Origin: Paragordius varius
Lineage: Eukaryota; Animalia; Nematomorpha
Length of the DNA stretch: 64,000 nucleotides
Direction: 5' to 3'
Assembly (NCBI GenBank): GCA_964247055.1
Contig: OZ176051.1
Coordinates: 9,114,001-9,178,000, forward strand
Shown here: piece after piece, positions 7,367 to 34,472 of the stretch
Layout: each line of letters starts with the position of its first letter
Position numbering within the stretch: position 1 is the stretch's first letter
Position numbers and translations under genes: made by a program
Notes under the pieces: generated by a model
Told to the model about the DNA's origin: nothing
Seen by the model: only the letters and a program-made list of their open reading frames with translations
Database searches by the model: none

Positions 7367-10300
7367 ATGTGGATCTTTCTTGTATTAATAATTATGACCC
7401 GATTTGGATTGGGAAAAACTGCTGAATGTATGTCAATTTCGCTTTTATATAACTTTTATAATTATTATTCATATTATATTTTAGGTAACGCTCTAAATAA
7501 TGGAACTATGATTTATTTTCCAGGTAAAATTTTTTATATTAAAATTATTAATATAATTTTACAATTGAGATCCGTTTAACTTTTTGCGAAATTTGGCTGG
7601 TAATCCTTACTAAAAATTGGACAAATTAACAAAGTGTAGTCTTTCAGTCGATTCAATAAATATTTTTTGGGGTTCCGTTTGAGGGTAAGACGAGGGAGAA
7701 AATAATAATATTTATAGGATCTATAAATAATTAAGCTGAAAAAATAATAAAGCTAATTTTTTGTGTTGACCACTAATTGTTAGTCGACCCATTAACTATA
7801 TTATAGTTGTCGTTGAAGATAGCAAAAATAATTTAACCAAAAAAAAAACAATATAGTATAACACCCTTATTTAGATTTATTAACAATTCACATCATTTTT
7901 AATATATGAATAAGAAAATATTATTTGCTTGTCGCCACTCTTTCAATCTAAGCCTACCAAAAAATAGTTCCTGAGGTGACTTTATCTAATAAATATTTTT
8001 TACAGAATTTTATGATTACATGTGATATTTATTTTTAAAATTTTAGATGAAACTCTTTATATTTATTCAAATATAGATGATGAAGATTTAGAATGTTGTG
8101 GTAATTAGTGACTATCATTTTTTATATACTATATATGTATATGGGGTTTGAACTAATATATTATAATTGCAAATCTATAATTTTCAGTTATTTGTTTTAA
8201 GCTTTTGCTAAAGACTCATCATTACAAATTAGTAAATAGCACCTAAAATTTAAACCCTATGACAGGTTTAAATTATTCAAGTTTCGTTTAAATATAAGTT
8301 CTATAATTTTTTTTATTTGCTTCATTGCGAATATTGTTACATTCGTAACTATAAGGAAGTTTTACACAAATGCTGTGATATTACGGGAATAATCACAATT
8401 AGCGGGTAAAACTTTCTTAAATAAAAAACTGAAACAATAAAAGTTTTCGACATCGAATGCATAAAAGTATATACACTAAGTATGAAATTGGGGTTCACAA
8501 AATATATCTTGATCTAATATATATTCTGATCGAATGTATCAAGATTATATAATGCTTTTGGTTCCTAGCCCTAAGAGTTATATAAAAAATATTTCCATTT
8601 TTTAGATCTATGCCACATATAGTTTTTTTTGTGCAAATGCTCTATTTCAAAAATATTTTTAAAATATTATAATATTATAGATAAAATAATACTTTTATAA
8701 AATTTTAATTTTTGAAGAGTCGTAATATCTTTAATTTTTGGCCCTCTTAAATATGAACGAGTGTTTAATATATGCAAGAATGTTAAGATTCGCAAAAATA
8801 TTTTTAATACATGCTAAATGGAGACATCATAAAAGAAAAATGATATTTTGCCTAAATGTTCTTATGTTCCAGGGTATTTTAAAACATGGTAACTGTATAA
8901 AAACGCTTCACGATAATAACAAACAATTTTTTATGCTTTAATGATGAGCGTATCACTTCCGATTTAGATCAATTGCAAATTTATATTCTTTCTTGTTAAA
9001 ACAACTTCTACATAAATCAAATTTTTTCATAGAAATTATAAAAATTCTTAGGTGCTATATACAGCATCATCGGATAAGTGTTTAATGACTTAAAGTGTTT
9101 TTACCGTTTCAAATGTTTCATAATGTGTTGATACCCGCTTTACCAAAATTTTGCTATTAATTAAATTGAACGAGAGTTTAATATGGAAATAAAATAGAAT
9201 TTATTATCTCAAATTGAGTTCATTTTATAACTGAATCCTTTGTGATTGTATAGGTGTATACATATATTTTAGCAAGGATATTTGACAATAATTAAATTAG
9301 AATACTAATAGTATTAAATACAATGTCATATAAATTATCCATATAAATAACAATGTCATATAAAATATAAATAATAATAATAATTTGACTTAAGGTTATA
9401 AACTTGCCAACTAACTTAATTAGAATACCATTTGTAATAAATACAATGTCATATAAATTATCCATATAAATAATAATTTAATTTAAGGTTATAAAAAATT
9501 ATCATTATCTTCACCCTATAGTAAAGCGGTCTGGGGTTTCTGCTGACGTTGTGGATACCTGTGTTTAGGTGTGTCTATATTCGTTGTTGGGCTTGCGTTG
9601 TTATCCTGTGTTGTTATGTCTATCATCGGTGATTGTATATCATTGTTTGCGGCTTCAAGATCTGGTGGAGTAGATGTAAGTTCTACTGAAGCAATTGGTA
9701 CTTCGAGTACTGGCGTGGTTGTTCTCGGACCTTCCATTCTTTGTTTTGATTGATCAGCGTGTTTTCTGAGGACTCTGTCGGTTTCGTCTTTTACCATATA
9801 TGACAACGGACCCCTGCGTTTTAGTACTTCCCCTGCTCTCCATCCTTTTTTATATCATTCTTTATAAAAACCTTCTGCATTGGAACGAATTGGCGAGAAG
9901 GTTCTATTTCATTATCGATAAACTCAGTTGTTTGCGATTTGAGCCATGACAATGGAGATTAGGGTGTCTTTTCATAAAGAACTTCGAGGGGGTATTCGTA
10001 TTTTCACTGTGTGTGGAGTTTCGATAGCCATATAAAACTGTGTTGATTGCCTCATGTGCATGCATTGTCTGAGTCTTGATAGCTCTATATCGAAATTAGG
10101 GTTGCAATATAGCTTTCCACCAATCCATTGGCCTTAGGATGGTATGAACTCACAAAAATATGTTTTATATTAAGATTATGTAAGGTACTTCTGAATTTAT
10201 GGGATGTAAAATATGGCCCATTATCGGTAACAATCTGTCTCGGGAAACCAAATCTCGCCATATGTTTTTCTAGGCAATTATTTTATTGATTTTAGTAGAT

Positions 10301-34300: not shown

Positions 34301-34472
34301 AACCCATACGGTGCCTTTAAAGTGGTAAAATTAGACTATATAAGATAATTATATATTAGGAGTCATTGTAATATGGATGATATTTTTTACATTTTTAACG
34401 TATTTTTTCGTTAGAATAATGGGGATCTATTTAAGGGGAAGACGGGAGAAACATACTTTGGACGATTTGTAG
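7367..34472 (+). CDS. Micro-exon gene encoding a Cys-rich type-I membrane glycoprotein (~330 aa; no recognised family)
   Basis: Hand-built exons: 7367-7427 (signal peptide MWIFLVLIIMTRFGLG-KTAE, donor GTATGT), 7485-7523, 8077-8100, 16617-16661, 20127-20138, 20537-20554, 21055-21147, 21216-21260, 21337-21348, 22348-22380, 23330-23359, 24825-24836, 25354-25443, 25565-25618, 25788-25802, 25907-25933, 26085-26102, 27832-27852, 27939-27983, 29187-29210, 31472-31477, 32177-32197, 32850-32864, 34126-34167, 34233-34310, and 34360-34472 (TM helix VIVIWMIFFTFLTYFFV, basic RGRREK, TAG stop). All internal exons are AG/GT-bounded, a multiple of 3 nt and phase 1. The 993-nt join has no stop. AATAAA lies ~35 nt after the stop. 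Individual small exons and the donor at 34311 are less certain. Confidence 0.72.
9167..9504 (-). repeat. 3' LTR of gypsy element, with internal tandem duplication
   Basis: Matches 13118-13348. The caatgtcatataaa core occurs three times here versus once in the 5' LTR. Confidence 0.9.
13099..13116 (-). promoter_or_regulatory. Primer-binding site complementary to tRNA-His(GUG) 3' end
   Basis: The minus strand reads TGGTGCCGTGACCAGGAT, 1 nt inside the 5' LTR end. The plus strand ATCCTGGTCACGGCACCA matches the invertebrate tRNA-His 3' terminus + CCA as I recall it. Confidence 0.85.
13118..13348 (-). repeat. 5' LTR of gypsy element (contains a TA microsatellite)
   Basis: Direct repeat of 9167-9504; abuts the PBS and the TSD. 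Confidence 0.9.
14800..15902 (-). mobile_element. Decayed Tc1/mariner (mariner-type) transposon remnant
   Basis: Minus-strand translation with stops shows KLCVWSD, FHDNVPFHTAKP and HPQPPDLAPYD (mariner HDNA and HPPYSPDLAPSD motifs). A possible TIR TATTGGGTTTGCTG lies at ~15890-15902. Boundaries are approximate. Confidence 0.75.
16944..17253. mobile_element. Small foldback element with sub-repeated arms
   Basis: Perfect 13-bp inverted termini TATACCATTTACA (16944-16956 / 17241-17253). The arms contain tandem ~21-bp units (aattcaccct..gaac) inverted on the right (agggtgaatttg). Confidence 0.7.
21482..21726. mobile_element. hAT-like MITE
   Basis: CAG...CTG ends; 8-bp flanks ATATGCCG / ATATGCCT (7/8); GGCGCCC subterminal motifs. 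The TIR match is weak. Confidence 0.55.
21850..22208 (-). mobile_element. hAT-like MITE (same family as 30287 and 44221), degenerate
   Basis: Reverse complement of the 30287-30655 element (ggcgcccctaaataacggcac...ggtacgcc). No TSD recovered. Confidence 0.7.
22699..22836. mobile_element. 138-bp palindromic Harbinger-type MITE
   Basis: Perfect 19-bp inverted repeat GGTTGTTTATTTCACACTA (22700-22718 / 22817-22835) extended by imperfect arms. TAA flanks at 22696-22698 and 22837-22839. Confidence 0.7.
23265..23316. repeat. (TA)n microsatellite (similar tracts near 13200, 14320, 28436, 36264, 43480, 56432, 60271)
   Basis: Directly visible. Confidence 0.95.
23751..24728. mobile_element. Long-armed foldback element, copy
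   Basis: Starts TATATTCTTATAG and ends ...AAAAGCACCAGG...CATCGGAATT. Arms align with 55357-56436. Confidence 0.7.
28010..28203. repeat. (ATT)n microsatellite, ~194 bp with a few ATA interruptions
   Basis: Directly visible; it explains the poly-I, poly-Y and poly-N ORFs in the track. Confidence 0.98.
30287..30655 (+). mobile_element. hAT-family MITE, 369 bp
   Basis: TIRs CAGGGGCGTACC / GGTACGTCACTG; perfect 8-bp TSD TTAAACAC (30279-30286, 30656-30663). Confidence 0.9.

Follow-up and report, generated by a model that had tools for sequence, protein, structure and literature searches.

A single-phase, micro-exon-rich candidate gene for a cysteine-rich secreted or membrane-anchored protein in the horsehair worm Paragordius varius

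In the micro-exon genes (MEGs) of schistosomes most of the coding region is carried by very small symmetric exons, and these genes have been reported as restricted to the platyhelminths (PMC4350168). In Schistosoma mansoni they consist of 10-20 exons of 6-81 bp, the range given for micro-exons being 3-81 bp (10.1101/2023.06.21.545858). The bicycle genes of aphids encode a signal peptide and have about 17 exons on average, with small internal exons that nearly all start at codon position 2 (PMC9168663; Korgaonkar et al. 2021). Here, we describe a locus of similar build in a nematomorph, the horsehair worm Paragordius varius (GenBank assembly GCA_964247055.1, contig OZ176051.1, forward-strand positions 9,114,001 to 9,178,000). 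This whole stretch of 64,000 nt is called the window, and coordinates are counted from its first letter. At 7367-34472 a first-pass annotation, made from the letters alone, had proposed a MEG-like gene for a Cys-rich surface protein. The explanation of the whole locus that we favor, with a probability of roughly 0.7, is a symmetric phase 1-1, micro-exon-rich gene whose product would be a secreted or membrane-anchored glycoprotein rich in Cys; the presence of a real multi-exon gene in phase 1 at the locus is very probable.

In the literature searched, micro-exon genes are not connected with Nematomorpha in any paper. For one published nematomorph genome only 10,320 genes and a BUSCO completeness of 71.6% are given (bioRxiv 10.1101/2023.06.26.546503). 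The published genome of Gordionus montsenyensis has 26.9% GC and 64% repeats, and the composition of our window (GC 20-36% in 2-kb steps) fits these values.

The exon chain and its statistical support

A depth-first search with the given peptide returned one chain only, consisting of 26 exons on the + strand with 993 nt of coding sequence over a span of 27.1 kb. The 24 internal exons are bounded by AG and GT, are 6-93 nt long and are, without exception, multiples of 3 in phase 1; the first base of each is the second base of a codon, and the reading frame remains open through the 26 exons with no stop. The exon coordinates, phases and lengths of the first-pass annotation were thereby recovered as the same chain, recounting gave its figures again (14 exons of ≤30 nt, 20 of ≤45 nt, 15 Cys and five N-X-S/T sequons), and its estimate of about 1 kb of coding sequence over 27 kb agrees with the values above. 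Exons of ≤36 nt hold 288 of the 993 nt (29%) and those of ≤81 nt hold 64%. The exons are listed here with the score and the number of chance loci expected in the class test described below.

7367-7427, + strand: exon 1, 61 nt; ATG, then a hydrophobic core resembling that of a signal peptide, G-L-G and K; phase-1 end; donor GTATGT
7485-7523, + strand: exon 2, 39 nt; preceding intron 57 nt; score 14.2, chance 1.2
8077-8100, + strand: exon 3, 24 nt; score 14.9
16617-16661, + strand: exon 4, 45 nt; score 14.5, chance 1.1
20127-20138, + strand: exon 5, 12 nt; score 10.5, chance 8.6; weak support
20537-20554, + strand: exon 6, 18 nt; score 6.6, chance 47; within chance
21055-21147, + strand: exon 7, 93 nt, two Cys and one sequon; score 14.5, chance 1.1; codon log-likelihood ratio +6.4; the claimed frame is the only open one
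21216-21260, + strand: exon 8, 45 nt; score 14.1, chance 1.3
21337-21348, + strand: exon 9, 12 nt; score 6.7, chance 45; within chance
22348-22380, + strand: exon 10, 33 nt; weak acceptor, strong donor GTAAGT; score 11.7, chance 4.8; moderate support
23330-23359, + strand: exon 11, 30 nt; score 14.7, chance 0.8
24825-24836, + strand: exon 12, 12 nt, D-C-C; consensus sites TTTTAG and GTAAGT; score 15.7, chance 0.4
25354-25443, + strand: exon 13, 90 nt; score 13.3, chance 1.9; codon log-likelihood ratio +4.9
25565-25618, + strand: exon 14, 54 nt; weak donor GTATAG; score 8.9, chance 20; within chance; the claimed frame is the only open one
25788-25802, + strand: exon 15, 15 nt; score 13.7, chance 1.5
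25907-25933, + strand: exon 16, 27 nt; donor GTTATA; score 5.4, chance 67; within chance
26085-26102, + strand: exon 17, 18 nt; score 7.2, chance 39; within chance
27832-27852, + strand: exon 18, 21 nt; score 9.4, chance 15; within chance
27939-27983, + strand: exon 19, 45 nt, two Cys; score 13.8, chance 1.5
29187-29210, + strand: exon 20, 24 nt; score 10.8, chance 7.4; weak support
31472-31477, + strand: exon 21, 6 nt; sites TTCTAG and GTAAGA; score 14.3, chance 1.1
32177-32197, + strand: exon 22, 21 nt; score 12.4, chance 3.6; moderate support
32850-32864, + strand: exon 23, 15 nt; score 15.5, chance 0.4
34126-34167, + strand: exon 24, 42 nt; score 13.8, chance 1.5
34233-34310, + strand: exon 25, 78 nt; poor donor GTGCCT; score 9.6, chance 13; within chance
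34360-34472, + strand: exon 26; hydrophobic helix of 19-22 residues (Kyte-Doolittle mean up to 2.2), basic R-G-R-R-E-K, stop
34507-34512, + strand: AATAAA, 35 nt past the stop; such a motif would often occur by chance in DNA this AT-rich

A chain of this kind is, by itself, easily obtained. The + strand of the interval contains 1,081 YAG..GTR pairs with a length of 6-120 nt, and in any given frame about 110-146 symmetric AG..GT segments are open by chance; since symmetric phase-1 segments stay in frame in whatever combination they are joined, such a chain can always be constructed. The tests were chosen for signals independent of the phase-1 exon search made in the first-pass annotation.

The main test was a cross-validated comparison of exon classes. 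Intronic splice-site matrices were trained with the claimed sites from one gene half and applied to the other half, a procedure which replaced leave-one-out position weight matrices (PWMs) with small pseudocounts, as these were too noisy. The score combined these matrices with an independent codon score and was computed over every AG..GT pair, with the transposon of intron 3 masked, and the strong candidates were counted in nine classes per strand (length modulo 3 by frame). At scores of at least 12, the symmetric phase-1 class of the + strand contained 17 loci, compared with an average of 4.5 for the remaining eight (Poisson p 5e-6), and on the - strand 2-5 loci were found in every class. No comparable symmetric phase-1 excess was detected on either strand of four other parts of the window. 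As every candidate was scored alike, this result could not be created by the selection of exons in the first-pass annotation, and we consider the class test to be the decisive signal for more than chance.

The same test sets the number of exons that the excess accounts for, which is about 13-14 and not 24. At scores of at least 13.3, the symmetric phase-1 class holds 15 loci where 1.9 per class would be expected, and claimed exons account for 13 of them (2, 3, 4, 7, 8, 11, 12, 13, 15, 19, 21, 23 and 24), which are supported as a set; six of these (3, 11, 12, 15, 21 and 23) measure 6-30 nt. The chain exceeds chance as a set, for about half of its exons, and does not do so exon by exon. The caveat attached to the original proposal, that some of the tiny exons might be chance, is a serious one. 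Among the exons of ≤30 nt, exons 6, 9, 16, 17 and 18 lie within the chance range.

Base composition, splice consensus and codon usage all separate the claimed exons from their background. The exons have a GC content of 32%, vs 30-32% in three independent long open reading frames (ORFs) of the window, and the flanking intron sequence has about 22%. At the donor sites, the last exon base (-1) is G in 13/25 cases (p 2e-6), position +5 is G in 12/25 (p 2e-5) and position +3 is a purine in 24/25; on the acceptor side, the first exon base is G in 10/25 (p 5e-4), position -3 is a pyrimidine in 25/25 and G is depleted upstream. No AG occurs within 20 nt upstream of 23/25 claimed acceptors, compared with 48% of control YAG sites on either strand (p 4e-6), and for the micro-exons the upstream zone is AG-free in 14 of 14 (p 3e-5 if unselected). 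Codon log-odds, for which the training set was limited to the CDK5-activator and MTFMT ORFs of the window, are higher for the claimed exons than for AG..GT segments that are open by chance, in each of the three length classes (p 0.009, 3e-5 and 0.0045).

Further in-frame forms and candidates were found along the interval:

8047-8100, + strand: long form of exon 3, 54 nt, phase 1-1; best acceptor of the interval; score 17.5
8202-8231, + strand: unclaimed locus of the strong set; score at least 13.3
16478-16555, + strand: 78-nt phase 1-1 candidate outside the claimed chain, containing two Cys and one N-X-T; exon 4 follows after 61 nt; acceptor zone AG-free; score 10.4
20537-20578, + strand: long form of exon 6, 42 nt; better donor than the 18-nt form
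30973-30981, + strand: unclaimed candidate exon, 9 nt, phase 1-1; consensus TTTTAG and GTAAGT; score 13.6

The candidate at 16478-16555 is possibly an exon that the first-pass annotation overlooked, and the main mRNA is unlikely to correspond exactly to the 26-exon join.

Some details of the exon borders may be added. In 7 of 25 exons (2, 6, 11, 16, 19, 20 and 22) a GT directly follows the acceptor AG; the last base is G in 13/25 and, together with the GT starts, the junctions look like AG|GT proto-splice sites. For Cys 21, 61 and 195, three of the 15 Cys residues, the codon is split as T|GT by an exon junction.

The ends of the gene and the predicted product

The locus is best described as a protein-coding gene which would occupy about 7.3-34.5 kb of the + strand, its coding sequence split into no fewer than about 13, possibly 26-30, exons of the symmetric phase 1-1 type, of which at least about six would measure 6-30 nt. 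The product would most likely enter the secretory pathway by means of a predicted N-terminal signal peptide, and its predicted architecture is an N-glycosylated ectodomain, rich in Cys and about 270 residues long, followed probably by an anchor that crosses the membrane once at the C-terminus. In this model, transcription, the precise set of exons, the signal peptide, the transmembrane (TM) topology and any exon skipping are what we infer. Since all introns split the codon after its first base and the internal exons are multiples of 3, any internal exon could be skipped or added in frame; such frame-neutral exons would permit splice variants.

The hydrophobic core of exon 1 reaches an 8-residue Kyte-Doolittle mean of 3.75, with small residues at -3 and -1, and the exon lies 57 nt before the well-supported exon 2. 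Signal-like phase-1 first exons number two per strand in the window, and the core of exon 1 is by far the strongest on the + strand. The sequence before it was assigned as follows:

6916-7366, + strand: 5' flank, candidate promoter and 5' untranslated region (UTR); the promoter function is presumed

At the other end, the last exon with a TM-like helix, basic residues, stop and AATAAA that had been proposed is present in the sequence (34360-34512). Beyond the N-terminus, hydropathy exceeds 1.6 (19-residue window) only at residues 288-318, and R-G-R-R-E-K follows. TM-like terminal exons occur by chance 7-8 times per strand in the window, and exon 26 is not rare when taken alone. A stronger donor, GTAAAA, is found at 34324, 14 nt downstream of the exon 25 donor, and its use would change the reading frame and lead to a short ending that lacks a TM segment; reading through exon 25 meets a stop after 15 codons. 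The TM ending thus hangs on the poor exon 25 donor GTGCCT, and a secreted form is as possible as an anchored one.

The predicted protein has Cys at residues 21, 40, 41, 47, 61, 73, 88, 102, 124, 140, 141, 151, 195, 222 and 231, with two CC pairs in the join. A search for an internal repeat between the two CC-containing halves gave no significant result (53% of shuffles score as high). A phmmer search with the 30-residue piece of exon 7 against 1.84 billion proteins returned six matches, which were rejected as spurious, being sums over a short repeated P-x-x-K/R-C motif. The protein collection lacks the products of the window's own MTFMT and CDK5-activator ORFs, and probably lacks relatives of this gene as well.

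Introns, repeats and neighboring sequences

The features that surround or interrupt the exon chain are the following:

9135-13318, - strand: degenerate Ty3-like retroelement with long terminal repeats (LTRs), inside the 8.5-kb intron 3 and antisense to the gene; GC 36%
41644-42375, + strand: ORF with a CDK5-activator domain; conserved
48823-50292, - strand: MTFMT-like formyltransferase ORF; conserved

The retroelement is flanked by LTR-like direct repeats (9135-9477 and 13136-13318), and its broken - strand ORFs contain integrase, RNase H and protease-like motifs; for the two longest of them no Pfam match was obtained. An antisense transposon within a long intron is commonplace. For the MTFMT-like and CDK5-activator ORFs the protein collection contained no close relative, themselves included.

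Two long microsatellites adjoin well-supported splice sites: a (TA)30 tract at 23262-23321 stops 8 nt short of the exon 11 acceptor, and a (TAT)65 tract at 28010-28203 starts 27 nt past the donor of exon 19. No repeat arrays at exon edges were found in the introns of the gene, which contain microsatellites and the transposon only. A dispersed repeat of about 250 nt with 75-78% identity occurs on both strands at 1619-1867, 5619-5860, 23019-23170 and 50944-51188, with further copies at 51500-51686, 53465-53712 and 54079-54242; it is probably a small non-autonomous transposon, and its copy at 23019-23170 is intronic. No Rfam match was found in the window.

Upstream of the gene, a segment of about 0.5 kb is present in three copies (1-339, 3847-4337 and 6916-7417; blastn identity 93-94%), and copies of it are carried by a tandem duplication of about 4 kb, in which 1-2827 matches 3999-6818 at 97.8%. 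The duplication array may extend past the upstream edge of the window.

On the + strand of the distal region at 50700-63980, strong symmetric phase-1 candidates show a mild, non-significant rise (15, vs 5-15 in the other classes), and the segment 59248-59293 is the other signal-like first exon in phase 1 on this strand. The region could contain another gene of the same build.

Among the sequencing runs examined, four of unknown kind also contain the introns of the locus and so behave like DNA. A run labeled with a second organism contained 0.26 of the 31-mers sampled from the mostly intronic stretch 20115-26110 vs 0.52 of those from the stretch of exons 25-26 and UTR, a difference too noisy to indicate conservation, since the runs of the first organism show equal variation in coverage. 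Such a run indicates that a close relative or a mislabeled sample exists.

Resemblance to known systems and competing readings

The locus resembles MEGs in its longer 5' exon with a putative signal peptide followed by many short exons that are multiples of 3 (6-93 nt, compared with 6-81 nt in S. mansoni), in introns of 0.05-5 kb that tend to be shorter toward the gene ends, and in being of a type that standard gene finders miss. It differs from them in having 26 claimed exons instead of 10-20, in placing 29% of its coding sequence in exons of ≤36 nt, whereas MEGs have most of theirs in micro-exons, and in a 330-residue Cys-rich product with a putative anchor, whereas MEG products are small and secreted. 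Furthermore, exon skipping is documented for MEGs, whereas here it is a possibility opened by the symmetry of the exons. Under the 3-81 bp range the locus falls within the size definition of a MEG, and under the strict usage (≤36 nt) it falls outside, with only some of its micro-exons statistically supported. What is supported of the MEG-like gene proposed originally is the phase-1 signal-like first exon, the symmetric 1-1 exons and several micro-exons; the 29% of coding sequence in exons of ≤36 nt is a smaller share than in classic MEGs.

The likeness to bicycle genes is in the phase itself: internal exons starting at codon position 2 correspond to the phase seen here, and the class excess is found in this class only. 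Both cases also concern Cys-containing secreted proteins (predicted here) of parasite-like animals, and the absence of sequence homologues outside the group is a feature of bicycle genes. Bicycle proteins have paired CYC motifs and no anchor, whereas here there is no C-Y-C and a TM ending is predicted; common descent with these aphid genes, which belong to a different phylum, is very unlikely. By analogy of architecture, a MEG- or bicycle-like design at the locus is supported.

A third comparison is with the classical modular genes of extracellular proteins. In the exon-shuffling work of Patthy, phase 1-1 exons are reported to be the general rule for extracellular proteins. Like such genes, our locus has a signal-like exon that ends in phase 1, symmetric 1-1 exons downstream and a predicted type I topology. 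In modular genes, however, one exon usually corresponds to a whole domain of 100-300 nt, whereas here exons of 6-93 nt would cut through single Cys-rich domains, and no internal repeat is detectable. The phase symmetry of exons is discussed in PMC3632108.

Several observations weigh against the reading that we favor. In the small RNA-labeled runs that carry the same species label, 0.00 of the sampled words were found, those of the last exon and 3' UTR included. Seven exons (6, 9, 14, 16, 17, 18 and 25) are inseparable from chance, with 13-67 loci expected. Unclaimed candidates picked by PWM also have mostly AG-free acceptors, and the AG-exclusion and polypyrimidine features may in part be a product of selecting good-looking acceptors. 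The number of Cys residues is odd, and five exon pieces searched against Pfam gave no match. The first 51 nt of exon 1 lie inside the third copy of the repeated 0.5-kb segment; the two upstream copies run for about 26 codons to a stop and have no in-phase donor, and are thus dead first exons, which look like orphaned stubs of promoter plus first exon. Finally, the exact join has in-frame alternatives of equal quality, several unclaimed candidates scoring as high as claimed exons, and an unconstrained dynamic-programming parse over-predicts, giving 24-114 exons depending on the penalty and no unique model.

Against this background four other readings were weighed. The first retains the exons and adds a function to their symmetry: symmetric micro-exons would be skipped in combinations, as proposed in the first-pass annotation, generating a pool of variant surface or host-interface proteins. 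The architecture permits this, all internal exons being phase 1-1, and in-frame alternatives are available in exon 3 (24 or 54 nt), exon 6 (18 or 42 nt) and the extra in-frame candidates; moreover, the MEGs and bicycle genes that share the design encode secreted parasite proteins (PMC4350168, PMC9168663). We nevertheless regard such a splice-diversified system as unlikely here, given that exons of ≤36 nt hold only 29% of the coding sequence and that a membrane anchor and a 270-residue Cys-rich domain are unlike the small, largely disordered secreted products of MEGs (PMC10399815). Cutting pieces from a disulfide-bonded fold would usually break the fold. Phase 1-1 exons are also, reportedly, the general rule in extracellular proteins that undergo no such diversification.

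A second reading keeps the gene and removes most of its smallest parts: an ordinary gene for an extracellular protein with about 12-16 phase 1-1 exons, in which chance AG..GT pairs, taken in because every symmetric segment fits the frame, make up the majority of the tiniest exons (6-21 nt). Symmetric open segments are numerous by chance (about 110 per frame), exons 5, 6, 9, 17 and 18 score in the chance range, and for micro-exon-sized pairs alone the excess of multiples of 3 is marginal in the richer model (16/8/8, p 0.04) and not significant in a simpler model on splice scores alone. This reading must nonetheless contend with exons 3, 11, 12, 15, 21 and 23, which are among the 15 loci found where 1.9 were expected, and with the AG-free zone upstream of 14 of 14 micro-exon acceptors (p 3e-5 if unselected), and it appears doubtful.

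It is distinctly improbable that the exon array no longer works or works in part only, as a decaying copy or as two genes (exons 1-3 and 4-26) split by the 8.5-kb interval of the retroelement. The start of promoter plus exon 1 does occur in three copies, two of them truncated and without in-phase donor, the retroelement does lie between exons 3 and 4, and the small RNA sets did give 0.00 of the sampled words; yet the frame is intact over 26 exons with no stop, exons 1 and 2 form a tight, well-scoring pair across a 57-nt intron, and antisense transposons in long introns are commonplace. That there is no gene at all, the chain being a chance construct in repeat-rich, AT-rich non-coding DNA in which hydrophobic stretches arise easily, is highly improbable: the search behind the chain was aimed at phase-1 exons, TM-like terminal exons are common, the RNA-labeled runs lack the sampled words and the exon 7 piece matched no homologue, but the enrichment is specific for class, strand and interval (p 5e-6) and independent of the choice of exons, and the codon-usage, GC and splice-consensus signatures point the same way.

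The symmetric phase 1-1, micro-exon-rich gene for a secreted or membrane-anchored Cys-rich glycoprotein is, on the evidence of this locus alone, a well-supported gene prediction and not a demonstrated system. A wider hypothesis, tentative and in our estimate unlikely, is that a large class of micro-exon genes in phase 1, coding for secreted or surface proteins and including this locus, arose independently in horsehair worms, and that in-frame choice of exons varies the proteins exposed to the insect host; if true, this would be a third, convergent origin of the MEG/bicycle design in a parasite lineage, largely invisible to published annotations. Should transcripts confirm the prediction, the design of micro-exons in a single phase would extend past flatworms and sap-sucking insects to another parasitic phylum, and standard annotation of these genomes would be missing a class of secreted or surface proteins.

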